This document shows, in pieces, positions 4,948-23,540 of a DNA stretch of 64,000 nt (the first letter of the stretch is position 1; the number at the start of each line of letters is the position of its first letter). The notes under the pieces were generated by a model. It was not told where the DNA came from. It saw only the letters and a list, made by a program, of their open reading frames with translations, and ran no database searches. Source of the DNA: Hyaloraphidium curvatum SAG 235-1 (Eukaryota > Fungi > Monoblepharomycota); NCBI GenBank assembly GCA_025558095.1, contig JAIVFI010000003.1:868001-932000 (forward strand), given 5' to 3'. The translations under genes and the position numbers were made by a program.

Positions 4948-6258
4948 TCACTTTGGCGCCGGTGCGGCCGGCGCCGCAACCTGCGGGCCGCGCTTGACGA
5001 CGCCCTTGGCGGCCTGCTTTTCGACCTTCACCGGCGCGCTGTCGAGCCCGATGAAGGAGACGTTGCCGCCGTCGACGAGGGCCACCACCGTGCGGGCCTT
5101 GTCGCCCTCGCGGCGGCGGGAGAGGAGGCTGCGGACGTCGCGCAGCGAGAGCGCGCCCGACGATGGTCTGCTTGGAGGGGTCGGTCAACGGAGGGGCGGA
5201 CGGAGGGGCCGGAGGATACCCACTTGACGACGGCGACGTGGTAGTCCGGCGGGCCGGGGTCCTTCCGGCGGAAGGGCGTGCTGGGTTTGTACACGTCGAA
5301 GGTTGGCAACATGGCCGGGGGTTCGGAATCTTGCCCCGAAGGGGGATCGCCCGTGAACCGCGGGACGATCTGCAGCTGCGGATACACGCTCTGCGGCGCT
5401 GTTCCAAAGTCAGCATCCCCGGCTGCGGCAGCAGAAGATTCGCCGGCGCTTACTTCGCGGCCGGAAGAAGCTCCCCAAAAGAGTCGTCAGCCTCCCGTAC
5501 AGCCATGTCCACAGCTTCCAGGCGCGCGCGACTACATCAATCCAATGCCGCCTCAGAATGAGTCCGTTGCTCTGGTCCGCCCGCGCCGCGGAAGCGGGCA
5601 CCAACGCGCCCTCCGATCGCGGCTGATGCCGCCTGACGACGTACCCCAGCCTCTTGAGGTACCCGTAGACCGCAAACTCCTCCAGCGTCAGCCTCTTCTC
5701 CCCCCCCTCCCCCCCCTTTCCCCCAAACACGATCGAATACGCCTGCTGCATCGACACCGGCGCGCCCCCGGACGTGAGCACCAGCGCGTTCTGCTCCATC
5801 AGGTACAGCGTCTCCTCGGGGAGCAGCATCGTCACCGGGCCCGCCGAGGTGCCGGCCGACTTGAGGTGGTTGCCCCGGGGTTCCGAGACGGAGGAGACGC
5901 CGTACGGGGTTTCGAGCTTGGCGTGCATGGCCTGCTTGCTGTACGGATCGCGGCGGGGCGTTGGTACGTTGGGTTCCCGAGGGTGGAGAGGCAGGTGCTC
6001 ACGCGGAAACGACCCGATCCTCCTCCAGCACGAGCTTCAAACTCCGCAGCGACGTCTCCAGCGCGTCGCCCTCCGTTTGGACCTCCTCCACGGCGTCGGC
6101 GGCGGTCCCGCGGAGGAGGTTGCTCGGATCCCTGAGCCGAGCGTGAGTGGGACGTGTTGGGGCGTGTAAGCCCAGGCCCACCGCGATTTGTTGGTAAAGA
6201 GCACCGAGTAGTCGACGGCCAGGTCATCTTCGTCCTCGGATTCCTGGGGTTTCGCCAT
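4948..6258 (-). CDS. SEN54: tRNA-splicing endonuclease subunit Sen54 (multi-exon)
   Basis: LLPEETLYLME, SMQQAYS, FAVYGYLKRLGYVVRR, FDVYKPSTPFRRKDPGPPDYHVAVV, VVALVDGGNVSFIGL; ATG 6258, TGA 4948-4950. Confidence 0.88.
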
Positions 6259-6287
6259 CTTTGCGAACGTCGAGGTCGTTAACAATA

Positions 6288-6409
6288 CAACAAAGAAAGG
6301 AGACTAGGGAAATCCCTCGAGATACCCCGCATCCCCCGAAACCCTGAAGACAATAGCCCGGCAAACGGGCCCCAAGGCCTTTCGGCCACCTTACAAAACC
6401 CCCCATCCC
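6288..6409 (-). ncRNA. Candidate Fanzor omega-RNA scaffold (element right end)
   Basis: Directly downstream of the Fanzor stop and ending at the proposed element end. Minus-strand hairpins: GGCC-GAAA-GGCC (6376-6387, GNRA loop), GCCCG-UUUGC-CGGGC (6356-6370), AGGG-AUUU-CCCU (6306-6317). Position matches known TnpB/Fanzor omega-RNAs; exact boundaries inferred. Confidence 0.55.
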
Positions 6410-9400
6410 TCACTCGACCTCGACGCAGAAGCCGCGAGGCCGCCTCCCCCCCATCACGCACTCGTAAGCCAGGAGGTAGAACATGTTGAGGGACGCCGAA
6501 ACGTCCCGGTTCCACATCACGTGGCATAACCAGCACTCTGCGCGGCAAGATGCAGAAGGTTAGCTCGCGACTCTGGGCGGAAATGACGTGCGATGCCCAC
6601 TCTTGACCCCCCAGACGTACTTCCGCCTCTCGACAAAGCGCGACATGGCCATGGTCAGCTTCGTCTCCTGTGCGACAATGCGACGTGAGCAGGCGTCGCG
6701 CCCGAGAGAGCTCATCCCTTCCCCACCTTGCACGAATAGCACATCATGGAGGTGTGGTACTCCCGGACCGAGAACCACCAGAGGTACCGGATGAAGACGC
6801 CTCCGGCCCGGTCAACGCACCGAGGCGCGAGCGACAGGGCGCGGAAGGCGACGGAGAGCTGCGGCGGCGATCGCGATGAGAGGCGCCGCGGGAGACGCAT
6901 GCTCGCAGACGGCAACTCACGCGCATCAGAGGAGTGCTGGGGGTTCCTTTGACGTGGGGCCAAACGGCATCTCCCAGAGCGACAATCTGGGCCACGGCAA
7001 CCTTCACCACCACCTCCTTGACCGCCTCCCCTCCACCGTCCTTGTCGGGCGGCTTCTTCTTCCGCCGGAGCCTCGGCTCGTCGGCGATCTCCATGACCTG
7101 GACCCGGAACCGCTTGTCCGTCTTGGCCATCTCCTGGAGAGCCTCGGCGGCTTCGGCGGACACGCGCATGTAGAACGGTTCCGTGACCTCCTTGACCAGG
7201 TCCTGCAGGGCCGACTTGGCGTTCCGCGAAGTGCGCAGGTGCAGGTCCCTGTCGAGCGGGAAGCGGGATTGTGAGCGGAGCGGCGGTGCGTGGGCCAAGG
7301 CAGGTAGTTCACCTGAGGCGCGCCTGCTCGTAGAACTCTATAGAGAGAAAAGAAACGTGCTGTCAGACGACGGGTGGTGCGCAACGCGCGCGTGACTCGC
7401 CGGAAATCCACGGCCTCGAGTTGATGATGCACATGAGGCGGAGCATGAGCATGTCCGGATCCGTCGTCTTGGAAGTGGGGATGTTGGACTCGAAGAGCTT
7501 GAGCCCGATGTCCCGGATCTTGACGACGCGATCCCGCGGAGGAGGAGCTTCCACACCGGCCTGGGGCACGTCCGCGGACTCGGCATCCACGTCCATGCCC
7601 ATGGTCGATTTCTTGCCCTTGCCCCCCTTGCCGAGGCGCTCGGCCACCTCCACGGGAACGTAGGCGAACTGCAGGCGGCCGGCGGAGATCAGGGACACGG
7701 GAAAGAACAACGCGGCGATGGAGGCCAACCTTCATGACGTGCGCCTTCTTCCACTTCTCCGAGATCTTCTGGTACGTCACGAAGCCGGCGGCGCGGCGGT
7801 AGACGTCGAGCGGGATGGTGCAGACCGCGATGAAGGTGCCGTCGATGGTGTTCGGGAGGAGACCGAGCCCGCGGAAGAACTGCTGCTTGGTCGGCTCCTC
7901 GCCCGGCTTCTTCAGTCCCTCGTCGTTGACGTAGACGGGCTCGCAGTCGAAGTACGTCTTGGTGTAGTCCTTGAGCTTCTCGACCCTAACCCTCTCCTCC
8001 TCGGTCGCGTCCCGCAGCTTGGCGCGAGCCTGCTGCTCCTCGGTCGGCTTGCGGTGCTTCGGGAGCATCGACTTGTCGGGATTGCCGGGGTACCTCTCCG
8101 GCTTGTACCCCGCCATGGTGTCGGGGTGGGAGCCGAAGGGGAGCTTGGGCTTGGGGACCTCGGGCTTCTCGGGCCGCACGTTCCGGAACTGCGGCTGTCC
8201 GCCCTGGTCCCCGAGATCGAGCTCAAGACCGTAGCCGTCGGCGCGGGCCTTCATGCGCGCCACCATCTCCGAAGTCGCGAGCCGTTCTTTGCCGCTCACA
8301 TGCACGACCACCTCCCGGCCGCGGTGCGTCTTGGTCTCGCGCGAGACGTAGACGACCTTGGAGACGCCGTTCCTCTCGCAGTACAGGGTGGTCAGGCGAG
8401 GGTTGGGGTCTCGGACCTCGCCCGTCCGGTGGTCGATGACGACGTTCCTCTTGAGCATCGCCATCACCCCTTCATACTTGTCCTCGTTGAGTATGCGAAT
8501 CATGGTGGGGATCTCGCGCTGTCCGGCGTCGCCTCCGATCTTGTCCGGCTCGGCGAGTTTCGGGTAGTCGTTCAGCGCGTCGTTGAGGACCTCTGGAGGT
8601 TCAAGACGGATTAGAATAGGTAGAGTTGCGACCGAAACAAAACCTCACCGAGTCCCTCCTTGCACCTCTTCTTGTACGCCTCGTCCCGGAGCTTGAGCTT
8701 GTCGAGGTCGTTGGCGGCCTTGCGAGGTCCATCGAGCCATTTGCCGTCCGCATCCACCCGGTGCAGCGTTAGGTCCTTGAAGATGGGAACGGCGCACGTG
8801 GGGTCTGCGTACAGCCCCACGAACTCGCGCCGGACGCGGCCGCCTCCGTCAATCTCGTCCTGGAACTTGCTCATGTCGAACACGCTGCTGGAAAGGTGAC
8901 CAAAGTTGTGCACGAACAGGGTGGCCGCCGCGCTCTGATCGGCGTGGTTGATGGGGTTGACCTTGGCGCTGCAGAGCGACAAAGGTCAGCACGGGATCGG
9001 CGGCGATCAACAGCGTCGACATACCCCTTGAGGACCTGGAAGAGCGTCGACTTCGAGTAGTAGTGCATATGGGGGGAGATGCTGTACTCGGGGCCAAGCG
9101 GGTACTGCTTAGGGGGGCGCGGAGGAAGGCGAGGAAGCTTGGCGGGCTTCGGAGGTTCGGGAGGGGGCGTCTGCGCCGGCTTGGCGGGCTTGGCGGGCTT
9201 GCCGTCTTTGCCTGCCTTGCTGGCCTGGGGAGCCGGAGCCGGAAACGCCGGAGAGGAAGGAGGGGAAGGGGAAGGGGCGAAAGGAGCAGAGGATGAGGAA
9301 GAGGAGGAGGGAGAAGGAGGTCCTGCCGGGGCAGGGGCAGAGGCGATTGCAGCGCCGCCCGAGGGGCCGGCCGCCGCCGCAGCCGCCGTCTTGGCTGTCC

Positions 9401-12400
9401 TCGCGGGCTGCACGCGCGGAGGAGGCGTTTGCGACGAAGAGTCGACGCGGTGTCGGGGCTTGGGCAAGGGGAGGTCGCGGATGGCGACGTCGGTTCGACC
9501 GATGGCCTTGAGCTTGGCCGCGAAGCGGGCGAGATGGCGGCCCGCCGACTTGAAGCCGCTTTTGTAGCCCTTCTGCACGCCGCCGTCCGAATTGGCCTTG
9601 ATCTCGAAGGTTCCGTCGGGCCCTTGCTCATTTTCGGCTGACGTCGAGGCAGAGGAGGTCGGCGGAGGTGCGGAGGTGCCCGTGCTGGCGGCGGCGGGAG
9701 CAGGCTCGTTTTGCTGGCGTTCTTTCTCTCTCTCGTCAGCCGCAGCGCTCCGCGCATCCATCAGCAACTTCCGGTGAGGTTCAAGGAGCCGGAGGAGGGC
9801 AAGGCGCACGGGCATGCAGCGCGTGATCTTGATGTGGTCGGCGCTGCGGCGCTTGCGCTTCTTCTTAGTCCCGTCCTCGGCGTCCGCGGCTGCGGCTTCT
9901 TGAGCAGCAGCAGGCGCGCCGCCGCCCGCGGGGAGACCCTCGGCCTCGACGTCCGCCATCTCCACATCCTCGTCCTCGTCCTCGTCCTCATCATCGTCAT
10001 CGCCGTCGTCGCCGTCCGCCTCGGCGAGATCGTCGCTGCGCTCGACCTGAGCCTTCTTGCGAACGCCGGGCGCCTGAATCTCGAGCTTCCCGGTGCGGAA
10101 GGAAGTCAGTTTCGCGGAGACGAGCGCGGCAGTCGCCACAGGCACCTTGCGCACGTCGTCCTCCGTGGCCTCGCCGGCGGCCTGGTACGGAACGTACGAG
10201 AGCATGGCCGGCTTGCCCATCTCGGGATAGAGCCGAGGATCGGCGTACTTGTACCGCGGGTGGCTCCAACGCTTGCCGTTCATGGCGTTGGCGAGCTGCT
10301 TGAAGTACTCGAGCCTGTTGTCGCACCACGCACTGTACGCGTCCTGCGGGAGACCGTGTGTCAGCAGCGCGAAAAGAGGCTTCGGGTGGCAAGGCAACGG
10401 ACCTTCCGAGTCTCGTGCTCCTCGCCGTAGCCCACGTAGACCTCGTGCGTGAACTGGCCCTTCCGGTCCGGGTGCTCCGTCTCCATCTTGAACGACCAGG
10501 TGTTGAAGAGGTCCGGAGGAGGATTGGGGAGGACGAGCTGCGGGCGATCGAACGTTTAGGCAGCGCAAGCGGTGGCAGCCAGAGCCGCGGTAGCTCACCT
10601 GTTTGGGGGTTCGGAGCTGGTCAACGACCTCGGGATCGAACCGATCGAAGAGCGCGGATATGGTCTTCAGCACCGAGACGACCTTGTCGGCGTCCTCCTG
10701 CGTCATGTCGGTGCGGATGTGGCCCTTCCGCTCCGCTTCCTTTTGCGCTGCTTCGGCAGCCTCCTCGAACTGCTCGGCGATCTCCTTGGCGTCCTCGATC
10801 GACAGCTCCTCGTCGTCGTCGTGGTCATCGTCGTGGTCATCGTCGTGCTCGTCGCGCTCGGCGTGTGCAAGTGCCTCGGCCTGTTCGGTCGCCTCCGCCT
10901 CCTCTTCCTGCGCCTCCTCGTCGTCCTTGTCCTCGGCGATCCCCATCGGCCGGCGGCCCACGGTGATGAAGGCGAGGTCGACGTCGTCCGGCTTCATGTT
11001 GCGGTTGAACGCCTCGCGCGCGCGGGAGGCGAGGTGCTTGACCTTCCTGGGGTCGGCCTTGGAGGAGAGGAGGAGGCAGCGGATCACGGTGGTGATGAGC
11101 GGGCCCGAGGCGACGAGCATGTTGCAGAGCGCGGTGAGGTATCGGTCCGCCGTCTGGGCAAGGGCCTGCGAGGTCCATGATTGGGCATGGTCAGGGTGGG
11201 ACGGGGCTGGAGAGCCACGAGGACGCACCAAGTCCGTGACGCCGTAGTCGTTCTTGACCTTGTCGTCCAACAAGCCCTTGTCGATGACCTCCTGGACCGA
11301 CTTGCGCAGGCGATCGAAAGTGTTGCGCACGCGCACCTTGTCCTCCTCCGAGACGTTGGACTCGTTGAACGAAAACTTGATCTCAGGGTCCCGGCGAGCA
11401 ACTGAGGATGCCGATAAGCATCGTGCCGAGCAAGCGGCGCAAAATGCGAGACCAACCCATCTTGAAGAGCGCACGCATCGAAGACGACGACATGGCGAAG
11501 TCAAAGTCGTCCGGAAGATGGGCGACGAAGTGATTGACGAACATCTGACTTGCTTCCGTATCTGCGCGGCTGAGGTTGGACATCCCCCGTTTCCAAGGCC
11601 CGAGCAGGTCGCGAAACATGGGCAAGACGAGGGATTCGAGGGCCACGTGGGGCCTCGCAACGTAACGTTCCTGCATGAGCCGCAATCAGCGCGATCGGAT
11701 GAGCCGGCGCGGCACGACCCACGTGGACGCGGAAAAGCTGCTTGCCCTCGGGGTCGAGCTGGTTGGCGAGCGACTCGGCCCACAGCACCGTGGCGAGCGA
11801 GCACCCCTTGTCGTGCTTGTCGCCCTTGCGCCCGCACGAGATGCACTTTTCCTGCGCGCGACCGCGGCCCGCCTGCGCGCCGTCCTTGATCACCGCCTCG
11901 GGAATGTCGCCTGCAGTGTGCCGCGTGCCCGTCAGGCGCGCCGCGGCGATGTTCCGGTCCTTCTTGAGTGTGATGTCGGTGACAAGCGGCAGCCCTGGGG
12001 AAAAGAGCGTCAGTCTCGTTCATTGCGATGGCGAGTGATGCCTCACCGTGCGCGATCGCGCTCTCCCTCGCGCGGAAGAACTCCGCCGCATCGTAGACGG
12101 GAGGGAAGAAGATGGCGGGGCCCGGAGGGGGGTGGAAGCGCTTCCGATCGTCGTCCTCGCGCTCCCGCGCCGTCGTGCGCTGGGCTCGCTCGGTGCCGAT
12201 CCTGCGGAAACGAAAGGGCTGTCAGATCGCACGCCGCAGGCGATCGGCCGAATAGCTGGCTTACCGGAAGCCGCGGACGAGGTCCTCGGGCACGCCAGCC
12301 TTGAGCGCCGCGTGGACGATCGCCTCCAAATCCTGGCCCTTGACCGAGACCTCTGTGCCATCCCCCAACTTGAAGGTAGCCCTTCCATGCTCCCGCTCCT

Positions 12401-15400
12401 GGTGCTGGCCGATAACACGGTCGGGCTCGAACAGCACGCCGCGCGCCGCCATCGAAACCAGTTCCCGCGGGTAGCCGCCGCAGTGGATGCAGTAGCCGTG
12501 CTCCGCGGCCGCGGAGGTGCCGGCCTGGATGCCGCACTTGAAGTTGAGCATTCCGAGGATGTTGGAGAGCGCGACAAGCGCCTCGCCCTGGATGGCAAGG
12601 TGGTGTAGGGTCGTGGCAGCACACTTGGGCGTCTGAAGGCAGAATCCCACGGCCGGCTCGGTGCGGTGGAAGATGTTGTGGGGAAGCGCGGAGTAGTACG
12701 ACTCGAGGTGCGCGCGGATCTTCGGCAGCCAGGCGAGCCACCTGGCAAGTGTGTCGGCGTCAGCTTCCGCCTCGTCGAGGTCCTTCTTCAGCTTCTTGAA
12801 GCGCTCGTCTGCGGACTGAAAAGCCCTCCGTAGCCCTTGGTAGCCGGTTTGGCGGCCCAGCTCGGTGCGTATCAAGTCGTTGCGCGCCTCGCGACTGCCA
12901 GGATCGATGCCGCGCCTCTCGGCCTCCCGCCTCACGAAGACGTCGTACTCGTGCCAGGCCTGCCGCGCAGCCCGCTCGGCATCTTCGAAATGCCCACGCA
13001 GCTCGGCCACGCGCTTGTTGCGCTCGGCAGCGTTCTCCTCCGAAACGATCTTGCACTGCAGAAAGAGGTCGTGAAGGCTGCGGAAAGCACCCAGGGTGGT
13101 GGCAGGGAACGGCCTCTGCGTTGCCCGGCCGTCGAGGGTCCAGATAACGTCGGCGTGCTTGAGGCTATCCGCGGCCCGGATTATGCCCTCCTCCTTGGTG
13201 AGGCGCTCCGAAACGCTCCCGTCGGCGGTGCCCTCCGGCGGAGCCCGGATGGCGGCAAAGCCTGCCCGAAGGTTGTACCAGAAGTCCCAGGCGCAGCGAC
13301 GGAGCCGGATGCATTCCGCCGACTTCACCTGCCGGAGCTTCGCCTGCTTGTTCTTCTCCGCCTTGGAGAGCGCTTCCCTCTGCGCTTTGGAAGCCGAGGA
13401 CCTGCGCAAGGGGTCCAGGGCCTCCTCGACGAGCCGCTCGAAACCCGGTCCCGGTTCCTTTCCCGCCAGCTCGGCTAGCTTGTCGGGCACGTGCACGCCT
13501 CCTGCGCCGAGATCCTTCAGCCTGCCGACTAGCTCCTCGACCATCTCCCGCAGAATTAGCCGCTTCTTGGGCTGCAGCTCGCCCTCCTTGGCGAGGCAGT
13601 CCCTGGGGAACACCTCAGCAATGAGCAGCTCAAACCCCCTTCGGTCTTTCGCCCTCATGATGTCGTGGAGGAGGAACTCGTTTGCCAGGTTGTGGCCGCC
13701 GTTCCGAAAAGGCTTGCCGGCCAGCTTCTCGGCAATCTTCCGCACGATCGGGCCGTAGATTTCGTCCGCCGCGAGCATGTCGATATCTTGGCCTGGAAAG
13801 AAGTCATCCACGATGTGCCTGACAGTGAGGGACGGGATCGGCGCCCTCTTGCCCGCGGGAGCGCAATTCATCTAGCGGGAAGGAGCCGAGTCAGCTGAGA
13901 ATCCAAGGCAGCGGACGCGGAGTACCCACCCGGAGTTGCATTCGAAAGCGCTCGTCCCCTTGCCGCTTGATCTCGGCCTCCTCTTCCGCCAACATGGCCC
14001 GGATGTTGAGATTGCGCCTGAGAAGCTCCGGGACCGGTATCGCGGCAGCGCCTTCTCCACCAGCCTCCTCCGTTCCCGCCCCGCCGCGAGGTCGCTTCGG
14101 CGGTGGGCTGTTGCCCACGGAGGGCGCGGCGCTGTGCACGGGCCCCGGAGGCCCGGTCCCGCGGCGCACCTCCTTCAACGCGCGGTGCTCGAGGTTGGTC
14201 GAGGTCTGCACGGCGGGGTGGTCAGGCTGACGGAAATGGTGCAATAGACTGGGAGCCAAAACGCACGTTCTTGGAGGCCACGGCATTGAAAGGCTGCTCG
14301 CGGTGGATAGACCCCGGCTGCCTGTCGTCCATGCCAACGTAGGGCAGCTCCTCGCGGCTGGGCACCGGCTCCGCTCCGTCGTCGCTCTGATTAGAGGCGG
14401 CGAGTCAGCTTTGGTCCGAGCTCGAGAAGGCGGCAACCCACCACCGGGTTGCTGGCAAAGTAGGCCCCCAGGAAAGAGTCGAGCCCACGATCGCGGTGCA
14501 GGTACGGATCGAGCTTGTGGCCTTGCTGCACGCCGAGCCGCTCCGCGATGCCGGTGATGCCCTTCTTCTCGTAGATCCGACGGACGTCGGCGACGGTCTG
14601 CATCGACGACCGAGACAGAAGGTACTCAAGAAGCGACCAGAGCGGCGACACGTTGCCGAAGCCGTTACGGAAGAGCTCGAGCACGGACTGAAGAGGATGT
14701 CCGTCAGGCAAACTATGCAGCACAGCGCGCGCGCAGACACCCACCGCGACGGGAGGAGGGCCCACGGGCTCCGGCTCCAGGCGACTCCCGGGGAGCTGCG
14801 CGGCAACCCGCCTGTAGTCGCCGGCCGAGATCAGCAGCTGTGGTCCAGATGTGCCGAAGTCGCTCTGTGCGGGCTTCGGTGAGCAGGGACTTGCTAGCGG
14901 CAAGCATGGCGAAGCCAACCTTGATGAAGATGGCGCCGAGCTCGGTCCAGCCAGGAAGCACCCGGGAGTTCGGTTGCGCCCGAAACGTAGCAAAATGCCG
15001 CACATCCCGTGCGGTGTCCTGGTCGATCTCGAGGCCCTTTCCGTGCGCCCAATCGATAAGGCCGAAGAAAAGCCGGCGCCCGAGCTCGTAAGCGTGGTAC
15101 TTGAGGATCTCCAGACCGAAGACGGGATCGCCAGCACCCAGATTGAGCAGATGGGCCTGAACGGCCGCAGGAGCAGCGAAGCCCATCAAAGTGCAGAGGC
15201 CATGACAAACGAGGTGCACCCCAACTTCTTTCAGCCGGCTGTCCATGTAAAGCTTGCCCGCAAACGCTTCCCATTCGTGAAGACCGGCTGACGGCAGGTG
15301 CCGACGCTCCAGCACGTTGGCCTGGTCCGCGACGGTCTGAGCGGCGGCGCCCACGTCCGCGTCGGCCGCCGGGATGTCGCGGGGCTCAGCGGCCTGTGCC

Positions 15401-16369
15401 GTCGGCTGACCATACGTTAGGCCGGCCAGCTCTTGGTCACGTACGGCCTTGACCAGGTCGGCGCTGCCTATGCCGTAGCGCTCCCGTGTCTCCCCGACAA
15501 TACGCTGGATGCGCTCGCGCTGCGCACGGGAACAGCAGTGAGCCAAATGCGCAGTCTGCGCACTCCCGGAACTTACATGGAGGCAGTACAGCATGAGGTT
15601 GTCGACGAGCGGGTTTGCTCGGTGAGATAATCCCCCGACCTCGTTCGTAAGGAGAATCCTGACGTCCTGGTCCTTAAAGACGTCGGCGAGCTTGCCTTCT
15701 GCCAGAAGCAGCTCGCGCACGCCCTTTAGGCCGCCGCTGGCGAACTTCTCGAGCAGATCTGCCACCGACTTGAACACCACGTCCACGCGTGCCAAGAGCT
15801 TGCGGCGGTCCTCGGGATCGCGGATCGCCTGCACCGCATGCCTGAATAGATCCGACGGTTTCTGAGCGCGGCGGAAGAATGTCAGCCTCGGTTATGGTCC
15901 GCCGATGGAAGTTCACCACCTCCGGGTTGCTCAGCGGAGGCCTCCTGAACACGTAAGCCTCGTTCAAGTCGACGCCGCCCTGGAGGAACCGTTCCCTTCC
16001 GGAATCCGTCCTGCTCGGCCCGGCGGATGGTGGCTGCTGGAGAGCGGCCTGCTGGAGAGCGGCCTGCTGGAGAGCGGCCGGCGATGCTGGCCGTGCGACG
16101 AGGGACGCGGCCGGTGGGACAAGTGGCGCGACGCCGCCGCGGCCCCGTCCCCTCGGCTGCGTAGCACCTCGCTGGGCGGCGGGCTGGGGGTTAGCAGATC
16201 CACCGCGTCCGCCTCTGGGCGCGGCAGCGGCAGGTGCGGCCGGCGGAGCCGAGGCGGGCGTGCCCGCGCCCCCGCCTCCGCGGGAGGCCCCACCACGGCC
16301 GCCGCCACGCCCTCCGCCGCGGCCACGTCCGCCGCGTTGAGATCCGGCGCTGGAAGAGCCGCGAGTCAT
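6410..16369 (-). CDS. Giant Fanzor1 (TnpB-like RNA-guided RuvC endonuclease), 22 exons, about 2,909 aa
   Basis: Manual splicing with introns 15862-15916, 15520-15576, 14865-14919, 14387-14441, 14206-14266, 13872-13929, 12202-12264, 11995-12046, 11671-11722, 11402-11456, 11166-11228, 10538-10598, 10344-10402, 8969-9024, 8593-8648, 7669-7729, 7338-7400 (GC-AG), 7249-7312, 6859-6920, 6668-6726, 6538-6600 gives one open frame with every phase compatible. RuvC-I KIGGDAGQRE (D 8528-8530); NIPTSKT..EFY..LR; IVALGDAVW..GTPSTP; SVREYHTSMMCYSC (E 6760-6762); CWLC; WNRDVSASLNM (D 6503-6505); C-terminal RRPRGF. Confidence 0.85.
16034..16078. repeat. Three perfect 15-bp tandem copies of CTGCTGGAGAGCGGC (encode AALQQ x3 in Fanzor exon 1)
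   Basis: Read directly at 16034-16048, 16049-16063 and 16064-16078. Confidence 0.9.
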
Positions 16370-17593
16370 GGCTGATGGGCGCTGCTGGCGTTCTCGCACG
16401 CGTCGTGCCGCAAGTGATGAAGGGCGCCGACACGGCGCGCCTAACCCAAGGCCACGCGTCCAGACGCGTCCAAAAGCCCTTCGCAGTTTCCGTTTCCAAA
16501 CAGTTCCACAGCAGCCTGCCGCTCGGCTCGCCCTCCCTACTTGCCAGGGGCTCACCAGCCGGAGCCGATTGACCGGGGGTCCCGGCAACTCCGCCACGCT
16601 CGGACCGGCGAGCGGGATCGGACTCCCGCGTCCCCGCGAAAGCTCCCTGCACCGCTACGTAGAGGCTGGGAGATTGAACGCCAAGGAGCTCGCGCTCGAT
16701 TCCGCTCTTCTTTCGATTCGGCTGCCAGCTTCGAGGGGATTCCCGCCGCGCATTGTCCTCGCGCCGGCGGATGCCAGCGCGGCTCCAGATACCCGGTCCT
16801 TTGAGCTCCAGAGGAGGATAGCCGCGACCACGGGACCTCCGTTGCTTCCAATGTTTCGGCGAGGCGAGACGGTCAAGCAACGGATGCGGTGCGGGATCCT
16901 CAGCATTGGCCCCTGAACGGCCCGAATCCTCCTGGAATCGTTTTTCCTCGCGGCATACCGGGAGCTCGGCCACCTTTCTGTGGAATGCCTGCGGTGGCAG
17001 GTCGCGGAAAGGAAGTTTCCATGGTTCGACAGTACCGCGGAGCTTCGGCCGTCATATCGGCGGTGATCGGGCGCAAAAGGGAGCCGCGCCGTCGGCATCG
17101 CCTTCCAAGATGCGTTTGGCGCCGTCTAGGTGTCATTTCAACGGGGATGCGCTGCAGGTCGAGGGGTTCGTGGCGCGGTCGTCTCGAGGCAACATCAAAC
17201 ATCGATGAAGTCGCTGATTTGCAATCTCTTCATGTACGGCCAGACCAATGCATCTCGAGAAACTAGCTTGGGCCGCCCGTACTTCGGTCAAGTTGTCTCC
17301 AACCTCCGTTGCCTGAGGAGCGTTGCGCCGTTCCGAGCTGACCCGGCGACCCCAAGGCTATGCCTTCAATAATACTCACGCCTGCCAAACCGCGCCCGCG
17401 GGCTGTCCGTCACTCTCTCCTCTCGTCTCGATCACCGTCCAGAACCTCTCTAATGGTTTACGTCGGGCTCATCTGTGTCCCGCGGAGTGGAGTCCGCCTC
17501 GTAGCGTTGTTCAAGCGAGAGGCAAGCTAGATTCCTGCATCCGGCGGTGATCGTCGGGCAGATCCTTTGGTTAGTGCCTACGTCCACCATCCA

Positions 17594-19359
17594 CTAGGAT
17601 TGCTCCGTTTTGGCATCGTCGGCATCGCGTGGAAACGTCAGGGCTTCCGCTGCTGGTCGCAGTCGAGGGCTGCTCTGCAGCCTTATCGCGCCACGCGGCA
17701 ACAAGGTCTGGGGCATCGCAGCACGGCACGGCGTCGCACACCTCGGAGCAGCAGCCGGGACCACGTCAAACAGGACCTTGTGCTTGCCATCCACCATGAG
17801 CACGCACGAGACTGGCGGCGAACCGAGGGATTGGAATACCCGAACCAGCCATTGCGAGTCGGGCGCCGAGGCGGCAATCGCCCCGACCGCTTCAATGGTC
17901 TTCATCCCGCACAAGTGTACGCAGAGCAAATCATACACCTCTACAACGGTTTTTTGCCCTTCAAGCTCTCGGAACCGCCCCAGGATTGACGATGCAGGCG
18001 CTTGACCGTTTTGGCTGGGAGCATTCCCTGCCTTCATCTGCCCCCAACTCGATCAATACCTCTGTTCCGACATTGTCGATACGATATAGCACCCAAAAAC
18101 TCGTGCTAACCGGGCGGATGTGGTCGGGAACGCGCTGTATCTTGCCCAGTTGTTTGTTCCATCTCGGGGAGAAGCGCATCCGGACGATCCCTGCAGATAC
18201 ACGCACTGGCAGTACAAGCAGTGCATGCTTGTTCATTGTCATCACCCGGACTCGCCGATTGGTTCTCCATCTCAGTAGCTTTTGCCGTTCGGCTGGACAC
18301 GCACGTCCGACCTCCCCCAAAGCATACAGTGCGTACTTCCATGCTGGGAAGATCTACAATAGCGATAGTCTGCCAGAATGAGATCACAGATATGCTGTTT
18401 CTTTTTCTGGGCCCGTGGTGACCGCAGCTTCTCACTTTTGGCTTGTCAAGTCGTTTCCGGTGAACGGTCTCGGCTGGCGAGAAAGGGGCACCCACCCAAA
18501 AGCCAGTCCACGAGGCAGGTCGCAGCAAAGCCGGCCCGGCAAGCATGTCAAGAATGAACGGGCATCCACTTCATACCCTGCACTTCAGGTTCCCATTCCG
18601 AGTGCACGGTGTGGGCCTCCTTGCATCTGCGGTCCTCCGGTGCATGCCGTTCGGAGCAGGCAGTCTCCCGATGCTCGATTCTGCTGTACCGTTATGTGGA
18701 CGTTCCATCTCAATGGAGGGAATGATGGCAGGTGTCATGATCAGGCTAGGAAAACTCAAGGTGTGGTTCAGAAATCCGAGCTACCGTCCCATCTATGCGT
18801 CTTGATTGGTGCTGCACGCCTCCTTCGATTGCGTTGTAGGCACTTGGTTGATGATTTCTTCACGTTCAATGCGGCTGGAAGCAAACTCTGGGGCATGTCA
18901 AGACTCTGGTAACGTTGCCTACGAGAGGCGGAATTGGAGGCCATGAATACGGCACTTAACGACAAGGAAGCCAGGAATCAGTCCCAACATGGATCATAAT
19001 GACGCATAAAATGGCTTTCTGAACCGAAGCATCAGTGCTCCAGTGTCTGTGCCGATAGCGAGAGTCAGCTTATGCTTCCACTTTGCAAGATTCACGGCAT
19101 CGATCACAATGACGAGCTTATCAGCATCCATGTTTCGACGGTTTCGGCTATCAGCGTAGGTTTCGTGGCCCAACAGCTTCTCTCCCTCCCCGGCATGAGC
19201 AGGGAGATGCCGGACTGTGACATAGGTCAAATCAAGATCTCGCCATGGATCGCACCAGCGCGTGACAAGGCGCGTGCCTCCTGCCACCGGCAATGGCAGT
19301 CTCAACAAGCCGTTTTGCTGTGCGTGATCATCCTCGTCCAATAGACTGACGAGCTCCAT
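17594..19359 (-). other. Unresolved lower-GC cargo segment, possibly a spliced or degenerate gene
   Basis: Protein-like minus ORFs 18994-19359, 17961-18320 and 17594-18037; visibly more AT-rich than flanking host genes; no family recognised and no convincing splice model. Confidence 0.25.
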
Positions 19360-19513
19360 GATCGCCGCGAGGAGGGGGGCTCAGTCTTCAAGCTGATAGA
19401 GCCAGGGAATCAGGCACGGCCCCGTGCTGCGTAAATTTGATTCAGCGGACCGAAAAATCCATTGTGAAACGACGGTGGCTTGCTTTGACCCAGGCACGGG
19501 TGAGAAAAGGGTT

Positions 19514-19783
19514 GGTTGACTTTGTCCTCGGGCGGTCCACGAGTTTGGCTTTGGTCCACGAGGACGTTGCCCGGCCGGTCCACGGCCACCGCTTCTGGTC
19601 CACGGCCACTGTTGACGGTCTACCATTTGCACGAATGGCCCACGCCGGGGTTCTCTGGTCTGCCAAACCTGAAGCGGTCCACGACTGCGCGGACGGTTCA
19701 CGGAAACCTGAAGTGGTCCACGACTGCACGAGCGGTTCACGGATGCCCCAAAATGGTCTACGGCGATGCGCAGGTGGTTCACC
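19514..19783. repeat. Phased array of 14 GGTYYACS-like octamers at about 20-bp period with variable spacers
   Basis: Motif starts at 19514, 19534, 19553, 19577, 19597, 19617, 19637, 19657, 19676, 19695, 19715, 19734, 19755, 19776; includes a near-perfect 39-bp duplication (19665-19703 / 19704-19742). Confidence 0.85.
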
Positions 19784-21092
19784 GCCGCTGTTTCCGACTC
19801 GTATCAGCGTCCTTCACGCGGAACATTCCGCCGACCCCACGGGGCATCTATGGCCGCTGCCGCGCGCTCTACGGTGCTCCAGAGGGCGGCAAGGAGTCGG
19901 GGTCCGAGCTTCGCCCCGCGCGGACCGGAGCGCCAGGACTTGGGAAGCCGGAGATATCCTTCAAACTGCCGCCGGCCCCGCTCGTTGAGGCTGCTCAGGA
20001 AGCGCACGGTCGTGTCGCCCGAATCGTGCGAGTAGCCACACAGTGCCGCCGCACGAACAAAGCGATCCGCGACTATTGCGATCTTGGCGCCAACTGATGT
20101 GCGGACGAGTCGCAAGACTGCCCGGAGGGACGGCCAGGCCGCATAGGGCCCGTCTGACGCCCACAGCGGGGTGCGTGCGCCCGAGGCGTCGGCCGCCCAG
20201 TGATCGGACCATTTGGACCTAAGCCTTTCGACGAAGCACCGGGTGCGGCGCATCTCTGCGCTGTCTACGAGCTGTTCACCGCTCATCAAGGAGAATCGGC
20301 GCACGGCAGGTGCACAGTAGCGGCCGCAGCATCCGCAAGATCGGAGCACAACTCAGCCGGAAGGACTGCTTGCGTAGTGAAGACAAAGGAAAAGCGACGC
20401 AATGCCATCTCCGAGATTCAAACAGCAATCAGACGCTTTGAGGCTGGCTCTCGCTGCAATCAGGCTGGGCGATGGTGTTGCAGGTGCAAGAGATTCGGAG
20501 CAGGAGTCAGCCGCACCCACAAGCCGGCACAAACACCAAACATCAGTGCTTCCGAAACTCTTCCATGCAGCCGTCATAATCTAATCTCCGGCAGTTCAAG
20601 TGTGCAGCTGCGGTCCATGGCCCCGGCGGACATCCGACAAAGGAACGGGCAATTTGCCCAAAGAAAGGAGCCGTTCGGGGCGAACCAGTGTGGTCTACAT
20701 GTTAGCTACTTTGAATCTCACGGAATTGGCTTGCCTAAACAGTGGGACTGTGCTCTTCTGGAGTCTTTGGCAAGGAAATGCTGTTCGGATGGAATTCGAG
20801 ATCGTCGCAAGTGTTGCTCGGGCGGCCAACCGGGCGGCCAGCGCGCGCGCGCCCAACGTTCTAGCCCCACACAGCCAACTCTTTTGAGACGAGGGTGCCG
20901 CCGCCGCGCCGAATCCTACGGGCCGCGTCGCTCCAAAAACGTGCGTTGGAAGCGCGGTGTCGGGTCGCCGGCCAGGAAGCGCACCGCGTCCGGCGCGCAG
21001 CACGCCCACCATGTTCGCACCGGCTCACACCGGCGGATCCGCATTTGCCCCGCAGCTCCCGCCGATTCCGAGTCTTTCCGCAGTTTGCCAGG

Positions 21093-21934
21093 ATGACAAA
21101 GTCCGCGAAACCCACGGCGCCTGCGAAAAAGGTCGTCAACTCGCTCCCCCTCCCGCACAACCGCATGAAGGTCAACTGCCACGCCGGACACACCGGCTGC
21201 GCCGAGTACAACATCATCGACGAGCCGCCGAACAGCACGGACCGCAAGGCCTACTTCGTCCAGGAGGTGGCGCCGCTCACCGTCAGCATCGTCGAGCAGC
21301 AGGAGGTCAAGCACGGGCAGAACCACTGCAGGTTCCGCAACACCATGCTCGGCCCCGACGGCATGACCTGCACGCGGTGCAACTGGACCTTCGGGACCAA
21401 ATCCAGCGCCCAAGGCGTGGGTAGATCGCACGCTGTCGGGCACGGACGGCACTGACGGTCCGGCAGCACGAGATTTGTCCCTCGAAACACTACCGCTGCG
21501 CGTGCTGCGGCTCCGGCTTCACCACCCTCCGCAAATTCCTCGATCACTGCAAGACCGCGCACCACATCAGAACCAGGGCAGGCTGGACCGTCTACCCGCA
21601 CGGGCAGGACGTCGAGCATGCCGAGGAGGAGGTCGGTTATGTCGAGGAGGTGGTCGGCTACGAGGACTACGGCGGGCCCGCGGCTGGCTACCACAACACC
21701 GGCGGGCAGGGCGGTGACGGCGGCCCGGAGCAGAGTGGGTCAACGGAAGCGCTGTTTGAAGTCGCCCGCTCAACGAAGGCAAAGAAGGCGAAGAGGAGGA
21801 CGCGCAGGAGGTCTAGTCGCCGGGGAGCAGGAGCCCGTCGAGGCCACGCCGCCTCGCCGATGACAGATCGAGACCGGGGTAGAGTCAGGGCTGTCCGCCA
21901 CGAGGCGAAGGAGATAAAGCCCAATGAGTTCTAG
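21093..21934 (+). CDS. C2H2/C2HC zinc-finger protein (element cargo, 1 intron about 21417-21466)
   Basis: After splicing GTGGGT..CTGAC..GCAG: CTRCNWTFGTKSSAQGHEIC and YRCACCGSGFTTLRKFLDHCKTAH; acidic middle; basic NLS-like KAKKAKRRTRRR; joins ORF 21650-21934. Confidence 0.7.
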
Positions 21935-22007
21935 TGATGCATGATGCCTGCCGAGGCGCAGTCAGCGCCTGAGCCAGTATACCGAAAGCAGTCCCTCGAG
22001 CCGTCAT

Positions 22008-22469
22008 CTAGGTCACGATACCCGAGCGTTGTCGGCCGGCGGCCGGCTCGCTAGCGAGAATCTGCTCGTGGAAAGCAATGTGCCTCTCCGGCTGCGCCGC
22101 AGCCTCGGAGCTGACGTATCTGACCTTCTTCCGCACGATGCCCTGCCTCCGCAGCACCGTGGAGACGTGCTGCTGAGTGACGGGCACACCGAACCTGGTT
22201 TCAAAGTCCTTCGCCAGTCGCGCCTGGGTGACCGTGACCCGCTCCAGGGCCTCCTTGGCCAACCATGCGGCCCGTTCAGGAGTGACCTTAGAGCTGGTCG
22301 GCGCCCGGCGGGGCTCCTTTTCCTGCGGGACAGCGGCTGCTTCGGCCTGCCAGCGGAACAGGGTGCTGCGATTGATGCCGAAGAAACTGCATATGTTCGG
22401 GACGGGGATTTCGAGCCCATTCTTCATGCCGAGGGCAACTTCCCGACGGTCCACGAGATGCCGGGACAT
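22008..22469 (-). pseudogene. IS630/Tc1-mariner-like transposase N-terminal double HTH, truncated before the DDE domain
   Basis: ICSFFGINRSTLFRW (HTH1), SKVTPE linker, TQARLAKDFETRFGVPVTQQHVSTVLRRQGIVRKK (winged HTH typical of IS630); stops at 153 aa where the first catalytic Asp would follow. Confidence 0.7.
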
Positions 22470-22588
22470 CGCGGGAGTTGTGTCGGTGATGATACCCTTC
22501 CGCAAGGTCCTAGTCTCGACTGTGGAACAGTAATGGTCGCGACGCCGTTTTTGAGACGCGACCAAACAACCAACATTCCTTCTTCGCG

Positions 22589-23540
22589 ATGCCGAAATCG
22601 AAGCGTTCGAAAGTCGGTGCGTGTCCTGCTGCCTCCCTCGCACCGCCCTGCCTCTTTTCTGAAGCTTGCGGCCCAGTCCCGCTCACGCGGACCAAGAAGA
22701 AGCCCGCCGCGGCCCGGAAGCAGGACCTCGTCCGCCGCATCCAGGACGCCCTCTCGCTGTGCGACTCGGTGTGGCTCCTCTCTGTGGACAACATGCGGAA
22801 CGAGTACCTGCAGGAGCTGCGTGGCGAGTGGAAGGGCAAGGGGACGATCTTCTTTGGGCGGAACAAGGTCATGGCGCGGGCCATGGGGGATTCGGCAGAG
22901 ACGGAGTACAAGGAGGGGCTGAGCGAGCTGACTCCCGTGGGCATCGAATGGCGGTTTCTTTCGGCAAGCGGAAGCTGACGTTCGGCGTCTGTTCTTGTCG
23001 GTGGCAGCGGCTCAAGGGGCAGGTCGGCCTCCTCCTCACCTCCCTCGACCCCGACGCCGTTCTGGAAACCCTCCGTCAGCAATCTTCCCAGCGATCATCT
23101 TACCTCCGCTCCGGTAATGTCGCCCCGCGGACGGTCGAGCTCCCCGCTGGCCCGCTCGTCCGCGGCTTCGGCGACGAGGTCGAGCCGGTCCCGCCGAGCC
23201 TCGAGGGGCAGCTCCGGAAGCTGGGGATGCCGGTGCAGCTCAAGAATGGGAAACTGGTGCTGTTGGAAGACTATACCGTGTGCGAGGAGGGGAAGGCGCT
23301 GACGGCAGATGGGGCGCACATCTTGGTGGGCGGCCTACGCTCGTCGGATAGCGGATTCAAGGCTAACGGACGGATGCACGACAGAAGCACTTTTGGACGG
23401 AGCTCGCGCAGTTCACCGTCACCCCCTTGTCCTACTGGCGGAACGGGGAGGGCGTCGTGGTCCTGCAGGAGGACGGTGCTGATGGGGAGGGCGAGGACAG
23501 CGGGGTGGAATCCGGGGAGGAAGCTTCTGACATGGAGTAG
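22589..23540 (+). CDS. MRT4: Ribosome assembly factor Mrt4 (uL10-like), 4 exons
   Basis: MPKSKRSKV, VDNMRNEYLQELR, IFFGRNKVMARAMG, LKGQVGLLLT, LRKLGMPVQLKNGK, YTVCEEGKALT. Confidence 0.93.

Follow-up and report, generated by a model that had tools for sequence, protein, structure and literature searches.

In bacterial elements of the IS200/IS605 type, such as ISDra2, the omega-RNA (reRNA) of TnpB is guided by sequence that adjoins the right end of the element on its outer side; it targets the empty site, with the TAM in the left flank. There is extensive overlap between this RNA and the 3′ end of the ORF, and TnpA mobilizes the element by a single-strand mechanism. The omega-RNAs of Fanzors have been experimentally mapped in only a handful of species. 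In Spizellomyces punctatus, the omega-RNA of SpuFz1 lies between the Fanzor stop codon and the right end of the element, on the same strand, and the element also has ORF-less ghost loci, Spu-1 (Saito et al. 2023, PMC10432273). A conserved scaffold of 75 nt is followed there by a variable flanking stretch of 14 to 15 nt that acts as the guide, and 134 ghosts are known; the rule for Fanzor and TnpB is that the guide is the DNA just past the right end (PMC10432273). The fRNA of CrFNuc-1 in Chlamydomonas reinhardtii, a non-coding RNA, maps within the 3′ UTR of its Fanzor transcript, and its sequence is conserved from copy to copy (Jiang et al. 2023, PMC10530073). The same study reported the association of Fanzor1c with transposases of the Mariner/Tc1 superfamily as a pattern and described the rearranged RuvC-II glutamate of Fanzors, an alternative E that follows a RuvC-II-position Gly/Pro by ~45 residues (PMC10530073). 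The arrangement that concerns us here, an RNA after the stop codon with a guide from the flank and with ghost loci, is thus already described for other Fanzors; we found no paper naming both Hyaloraphidium and Fanzor.

The window analyzed here is a stretch of 64,000 nt (G000:C3:868001-932000) of a eukaryotic genome of 31.9 Mb with ~63% GC, and coordinates given below without a contig name refer to it. A preliminary description had proposed a candidate omega-RNA in this window, downstream of a Fanzor stop codon. Its observation is partly confirmed and its interpretation partly supported by our analysis, according to which the minus strand from 6404 to 6280 is probably both omega-RNA scaffold and right end in a 16-kb IS630/Tc1-like Fanzor1 element, with a guide taken from the leader of SEN54.

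The Fanzor/TnpB-like gene lies on the minus strand, and the stop codon on which the proposal was built is indeed present, as a TGA at 6412-6410 (translated frame end ..CWLCHVMWNRDVSASLNMFYLLAYECVMGGRRPRGFCVEVE*). Run X1 was taken as the transcriptome of the same organism because its spliced contigs show zero mismatches. One of these (record 2) is a Fanzor contig of 6,735 nt, the last 2.2 kb of which map to eight window exons delimited by contig joints on the minus strand: 8969-8649, 8592-7730, 7668-7401, 7337-7312, 7247-6921, 6858-6726, 6666-6601, and 6537-6372. The introns between them, as read from the contig against the window, all measure 56 to 64 nt and are of the GT..AG type except for one GC..AG; the last one occupies 6538-6600. 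Exon-wise translation, with the phase set by the stop, gives a frame that is open from 8969 to the stop codon. Since another 4,565 nt of the contig lie upstream of 8969, the nuclease domain forms the tail of a very large transcript. The upstream part of the contig is coding sequence of low complexity, rich in acidic residues and proline (ORF 8871-12023; window 8970-14126, minus strand). Two pieces of the Fanzor exons were also found in run X2, which is an oligo-dT environmental RNA run.

The last coding exon (6410-6537, minus strand) reads ..CWLCHVMWNRDVSASLNMFYLL..FCVEVE* and holds the second CxxC of the zinc ribbon together with the RuvC-III motif WNRD. The two exons before it (6858-6726 and 6666-6601, minus strand; ..REYHTSMMCYSCK) encode the alternative glutamate of RuvC as well as the first CxxC; they are based on the X1 contig joints, a phase-consistent translation, and motif comparison with the paralog L012. 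Reading the exon translations, we noted as candidate catalytic motifs ..IRDIGLK.., assigned to RuvC-I solely by motif resemblance, ..ALGDAVW.., then ~50 residues further on ..REYHTS.., and finally ..WNRD... A glycine at the RuvC-II position, the later REYHTS, the split CxxC..CxxC ribbon, and WNRD correspond to the reported Fanzor signature. Compared with the C-terminal ends of its paralogs in this genome, the last exon showed 44-47% identity (E 1e-9 to 2e-11); the best match, 47% over 36 aa (E 2e-11), was to a paralog with an ORF that passes Pfam PF07282. A Pfam search with the window exons one by one gave no PF07282 match, the zinc ribbon being split over three exons, and nothing useful otherwise. 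The window gene is a Fanzor-type nuclease gene that is transcribed and spliced. An exhaustive protein search with the N-terminal exon of 287 aa among 1.8 billion representatives returned one weak true relative of 326 aa (E 2e-6), encoded on a 1.4-kb contig that stops short of the 3′ end; the other two matches were repeat-protein noise. Ten identical open frames of 199 aa (e.g. C15:545749-545823 and C5:5540-5614) have the same weak, sub-cut-off match to PF07282 (22.6 bits) and form a multi-copy family of their own, which has a motif like a zinc ribbon.

Across the 9 kb from 5500 to 14500, only 6334-6448 recurs in the genome, besides the repeat edge at 14126-14500. Its counterparts, at 79% identity, are the right ends of two ghost elements of 1.1 kb (C5:133977-135080, or L006:6978-8081, and C11:51444-52549), which are 97% identical to each other and carry the window-type scaffold at the right end without a Fanzor ORF; from this stretch to the element end the similarity is patchy. 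The 29 nt at 6372-6400 are identical in all three window-type loci, and one substitution is followed by 16 more identical bases. The strongest conservation covers 6349-6403, which lies 70-125 nt inside the element end, and conservation is lowest over the terminal 70 nt. This core on the minus strand, outlined by a genome pattern and by the table of hairpins, comprises a G/U-rich lead, hairpin 1, and hairpin 2. Ghost similarity, the right-end junction in run X3, and the start of a solo copy on C29 place the candidate scaffold, which doubles as the element's right terminal region, at 6280-6404 (~125 nt, minus strand), the 3′ limit coming from an X3 contig and the 5′ limit from the solo C29 start and the top edge of the high-depth contigs. 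The Fanzor stop (6412-6410), the core start (~6404), and the element end (6280) thus follow one another on the same strand. As for the ghosts, they have ~eight GGTCYACGG repeats in their first 250 nt, a TATA-like box (CTATAAAAG), and a short basic ORF (MRARKKRKKDPL*); their left end is also present as a 115-nt fragment at C35:490622-490736, and an internal piece of 90 nt (positions 384-475) is 76-89% like six other loci. Carrying this scaffold beside different flanks, the ghosts would rely in trans on the one window-type nuclease.

Sequence comparison revealed a short, 64-nt version of the core 3′ of the stop codon, on the strand of the Fanzor gene, in three diverged Fanzor paralogs (C23, C12:33.9k, and C15:378.8k). 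A solo short-type copy of 62 nt at C29:418170-418231 (L028:1488-1549) is 100% identical to the C12 copy; it begins 8 nt past the stop position and finishes exactly at the element boundary, with no other element sequence alongside. The core therefore stands directly after four different Fanzor stops, always 6-10 nt away and on the same strand. A degenerate core pattern had seven matches genome-wide, all of them Fanzor-linked, ghost or solo ends, compared to zero in a reversed control. A covariance model, the check suggested at the outset, was built from the three near-identical window-type copies and found the C23 copy weakly (E 0.019), but missed C12 and C15 with default filters. No Rfam family was detected in window 5800-7200 or in either ghost locus, and a metagenome scan with 23 nt of the scaffold core gave zero matches.

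Three short hairpins, one of them with a GAAA loop, had been noticed in this region, and all are in the sequence of the minus strand: H1 at 6387-6376 (GGCC-GAAA-GGCC), H2 at 6371-6355 ((G)GCCCG-UUUGC-CGGGC(U)), and H3 at ~6318-6307 (AGGG-AUUU-CCCU). Their folding energy, however, is at the level of dinucleotide shuffles (z = 0.02 for 6288-6409 and z = -0.67 for 6268-6470). As z is near 0 in GC-rich DNA, the hairpins by themselves are no evidence. H3 is not conserved in any relative, whereas hairpin 1 is kept in all copies, with a GGC..GCC stem in both types and the loop CGAAAG in the window type or UGUAA/U in the short type. Hairpin 2 pairs GCCCG with CGGGC around the loop UUUGC in the window type, and GCGAC with GUCGC around GUUA in the short type. 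Both sides have changed in three of its five pairs between the subfamilies, which represent only two independent lineages; a sixth, outer pair is G.U in the window, A-U in the ghosts, U-A in C12 and C29, and unpaired in C23 and C15. By our estimate, a diverged sequence would have a perfect 5-bp hairpin at this position by chance in a few percent of cases. The compensatory changes in hairpin 2 thus suggest that pairing is constrained, and we regard them as supportive rather than conclusive. RNAalifold on the window and the two ghosts found both hairpins invariant, hence zero covariation inside this trio. The subfamilies were compared by a table of their hairpins, MAFFT alignments between them not being structure-consistent.

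To place the right end, we used a contig of run X3, which is unspliced, hence DNA, and 91-99% similar to the window. This contig matches 6344-6280 over 65 nt, with a single mismatch, before continuing with 86 unrelated bases. The first 30 of these have one occurrence in the genome, at C12:498949, an empty site (..GCGCCAAA|CAATGTTCG..). Since X3 joins the right end to DNA that is unoccupied in this genome, the element end falls at 6280|6279 (+/-1), as ..GTATTGTTA|. This is 8 nt further out than the end first proposed, ..CTTTGTTG|TA at 6288|6287. In keeping with this, the ghost ends (..GGTGGTA|C), right-justified in an alignment read by eye, agreed best with an end at 6280. The four short-type copies have ..GTAGTAGTAGAA in common before diverging completely. 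The predicted picture of a conserved scaffold followed by abrupt divergence in other copies stands, but with the break at 6280 instead of 6287. The presence of the same right end at a different place in the X3 data set is an insertion polymorphism, and its near identity (one mismatch in 65 nt) implies recent movement. In X3, the junction at C12:498949 (L017:1501) reads ..TTGTTA|CAATGTTCGCGG.., and the site is ~65 nt upstream of a minus-strand gene start.

With the boundary at 6280|6279, the Fanzor/TnpB rule predicts a guide at about 6279-6260 (ACGACCTCGACGTTCGCAAA, minus strand), with its last base 1 nt before the ATG of SEN54. The gene start and first exons of SEN54 cover 5721-6258 on the minus strand, with the ATG at 6258-6256 (PF12928, 36.7 bits; cut-off 24). 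The guide would therefore be the SEN54 5′ leader, as the preliminary description had it, the element ending 21 nt upstream of the ATG. The guide it proposed, however, starts with 8 nt (TATTGTTA) that belong to the element. The empty allele, originally given as CCATTA|TTGTTAACGACC, is corrected to ..GCGACCA(TTA)ACGACCTCG... A TAM ending in TA had also been predicted. TTA does precede both known left ends, yet the empty C12 site reads ..GCCAAA|CAATG... Because the right end itself finishes in GTTA, TTA would mark the occupied site as well, so that TTA alone cannot be the whole TAM. A right end very close upstream of a host ATG, in the same orientation, is seen in the window (21 nt; 6258-6280), on C23 (~16 nt; L019 ~1040-1090), and at the C5 ghost (~45 nt); the right flanks of the C5 and C11 ghosts were both considered. 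In the window, the element splits an apparent divergent promoter of 80-100 bp between SEN54 and a plus-strand gene starting near 22590.

Transcription over the scaffold was followed as summed X1 contig depth per bin; as this uses assembled contigs rather than reads, RNA ends are indirect. The depth was 271 in 6170-6283, 15,326 in 6284-6397, and 1,721 in 6398-6511, with 140-403 in the other bins, which places the core bin ~40-fold above the flanking mRNA (~15,300 versus 300-400). The 271 in the lowest of these bins is exactly the contribution of the SEN54 contig (X1 record 1, 588 nt, mean depth 300), whose exons are 5721-5938, 6003-6130, and 6181-6400. Since this contig runs unbroken from 6400 into the SEN54 exons, transcripts do cross the element boundary. 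Another X1 contig fits the window only from 6355 upward and then continues with 42 nt of C11-ghost sequence, which shows transcription of the ghost scaffold. The surplus of 1.70 and 0.15 million depth-bases in the two high bins is compatible with contigs restricted to 6355-6400, a stretch shared exactly with the ghosts, at a total depth on the order of 10^4 to 5x10^4; the abundant core RNA is at least partly ghost-derived. Window-specific words sit in the SEN54 contig, and we estimate the scaffold RNA of the window copy at roughly 1,900 at most, far below the level over the core. There are no high-depth X1 contigs below 6284, and abundant guide-bearing RNA from the window locus was not seen in X1. 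The upper limit of the high-depth contigs lies near 6400. Ghost sequence upstream of the core is present in no X1 contig (X3 has one with 208 nt), suggesting a 5′ end of the abundant RNA no more than a few bases from where the core begins; the solo C29 copy has its first base there too. A Pol III-type unit was rejected on direct reading, no copy having a T-run after the predicted guide, and splicing within the scaffold was rejected because the SEN54-leader contig is continuous over 6181-6400.

The whole composite element covers 6280-22533 on the minus strand (16.25 kb) and consists of the left end, a broken transposase gene, a middle part, the giant Fanzor, and the scaffold. The left end (22491-22533, minus strand; ..CCA TTA|CTGTTCCACAGTCGAGACTAGG..) is followed by the HTH of an IS630/Tc1-type transposase. 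Its original placement at 22531 and above is confirmed, at 22531-22533, by a second copy on C23, which has the same start (..CTT TTA|CTGTTCCAC.. compared to ..CCA TTA|CTGTTCCAC.. in the window) and 97% identity over 490 nt. The part from 22533 to 14126 is multi-copy (85-97%) and that from 14126 to 6410 is the single-copy giant Fanzor transcription unit; the element's C5 copy is homologous as far as this limit at 14126. The C23 locus is a colinear, strongly diverged copy of the whole element, of ~18 kb and with the same order of parts. Its Fanzor homolog (25-50% aa identity) ends in ..FFVEVE*, after which come ~64 nt with a recognisable core, and its transposase has both HTH_33 and DDE_3 (DDE_3 29.7 bits; cut-off 28.6). 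The window transposase has HTH_33 alone, at 24.1 bits just below the cut-off of 25. In window 22041-20355, homology to intact transposase copies breaks at 22041 and resumes at 20678/20355. With its DDE part replaced or lost, the window copy cannot supply its own transposase.

An inverted 9-mer, GAGACTAGG, is common to the left and right ends at offsets 17 and 21. In a control of 20,000 random 43-nt windows, 87 shared a word of at least 9 nt, 22 of them at a similar offset (p ~0.001-0.004). The evidence for terminal inverted repeats consists of this 9-mer and 8/13 terminal matches; an inverted copy of the left-end 23-mer is found nowhere in the genome, nor is any strong inverted left end, and the window element contains no ghost-type left end. 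TA or TTA stands at both window ends and at none of the short-type ends, and the empty site (..CCAAA|CAATG..) is without TA; a TA/TTA target duplication was accordingly rejected as a firm feature. On the strength of the same part order on C23, the inverted 9-mer, and the confirmed left end, we accept 6280-22533 as one composite element. At 19533-19780 (plus strand), in the multi-copy part, there are ~ten GGTCCACG/GGTTCACGG/GGTCTACGG repeats that resemble the subterminal repeats of the ghosts; relative to the Fanzor gene they are on the opposite strand compared with the ghosts, and they could represent an array bound by the transposase or else one end of an element nested here.

The main rival to the scaffold reading, which we consider rather doubtful, is that the block is a cis-acting right terminus of the transposon, with transposase sites and perhaps DNA hairpins, combined with the Fanzor 3′ UTR, and that its RNA is a non-guiding by-product. 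Because the conserved block is also a transposon terminus, constraint at the DNA level could account for part of its conservation. It stops exactly at the element boundary and has the inverted 9-mer in common with the left end; it is retained in ghost and solo copies, as non-autonomous elements retain their termini; and its folding energy is ordinary, with no guide-bearing RNA seen from the window locus. The distribution of conservation argues the other way, being strongest 70-125 nt inside the end (6349-6403) and weakest over the terminal 70 nt. Furthermore, short-type and window-type ends have the two hairpins in common but not the 9-mer, the compensatory changes of hairpin 2 point to pairing, and core RNA is ~40 times as abundant as the flanking mRNA. 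To our knowledge, pairing is not a known requirement of the ends of cut-and-paste IS630/Tc1 elements.

Two further explanations make different use of the abundant RNA. In one, which we hold to be unlikely and which overlaps both the scaffold reading and the terminus explanation, the region is a relic: a former omega-RNA in an immobile copy, now mainly promoter and 5′ leader of SEN54, with only the ghosts producing abundant RNA. Immobility would agree with the window transposase keeping only its HTH, homology to the DDE_3-bearing C23 copy breaking at 22041, and a leader function with the continuity of the SEN54 contig from 6400 into coding exons; the ghost-shared stretch accounts for the high depth. 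Against a relic stand the Fanzor frame, which is open, spliced, and also seen in the oligo-dT environmental RNA run, and the near-identical right end at another site, which speaks for recent movement. The other explanation, very improbable in our judgment, regards the core as an unrelated abundant host non-coding RNA, with the 1.1-kb repeats as its genes and a copy after the Fanzor stop by accident. The very high core depth would suit it, as would the 1.1-kb units with a TATA-like box, of which there are just two. It is contradicted by the Rfam search, which gave no family in the window or the ghost loci, by the position of the core 6-10 nt after four Fanzor stops on the same strand, and by the finding that all 7 of 7 genomic occurrences are Fanzor-linked, ghost or solo ends.

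If 6404-6280 is the omega-RNA scaffold, as we favor, transcription of the Fanzor 3′ UTR would continue past the element end and into the leader of SEN54; boundary-crossing transcription of this kind is shown by the contig of the SEN54 transcript. The nuclease would bind the structured core, with its G/U-rich lead and two hairpins, and so keep an RNA that ends 15-20 nt past 6280. The 3′ tail of this guide-bearing RNA (~6279-6260) would pair with an element-less copy of the locus, beside a putative TAM contributed by the left flank. Cleavage there, followed by repair from the occupied copy, would result in homing, the element being retained or re-installed. A more far-reaching version, which is speculative and on balance quite unlikely, is that the scaffold RNAs of the ghosts are among the most abundant of the cell and load the single giant Fanzor in trans, mostly programming it for gene-proximal sites, while at SEN54 the same scaffold, as part of the leader of the host gene, would couple transcription of an essential tRNA-splicing gene to guide production. 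If true, this would be a step from selfish homing toward a host-integrated RNA-guided system in a eukaryote. The locus bears on whether a giant transposase-linked Fanzor is RNA-guided, and on its TAM. For a genome that holds unusually large Fanzor genes, a candidate scaffold, a corrected boundary, and a predicted 20-nt guide are now available, and an insertion that differs between two data sets and a ghost RNA visible at a very high level are further starting points.

Among the known systems, SpuFz1 resembles the window element in the position and strand of the RNA region, in ghosts that keep the right end, and in a conserved scaffold with a variable flank (a candidate here); the host is likewise a chytrid-grade fungus. 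The two differ in scale: the scaffold is ~125 nt here (64 nt in the sister subfamily) versus 75 nt, there are 2 ghosts and 1 solo copy versus 134 ghosts, and the nuclease is part of a transcript of >6.7 kb versus a single-ORF element of 2.1 kb. The window element also lacks the 30-nt perfect inverted repeats of SpuFz1, and it is known from sequence and transcript contigs. With CrFNuc-1 it has in common an intron-containing Fanzor gene, a (here candidate) RNA region in the 3′ UTR that is conserved among copies, and the rearranged RuvC-II glutamate, and its Tc1-type transposase follows the Mariner/Tc1 pattern reported in that study; CrFNuc, however, resides in Helitron-2, whereas the carrier here is an element of 16-18 kb with an HTH_33 + DDE_3 transposase. 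The predicted guide source, the empty-site target, and the TAM in the left flank are those of TnpB in ISDra2. Unlike the bacterial RNA, the one described here appears to begin after the stop codon, and its carrier encodes a DDE transposase.
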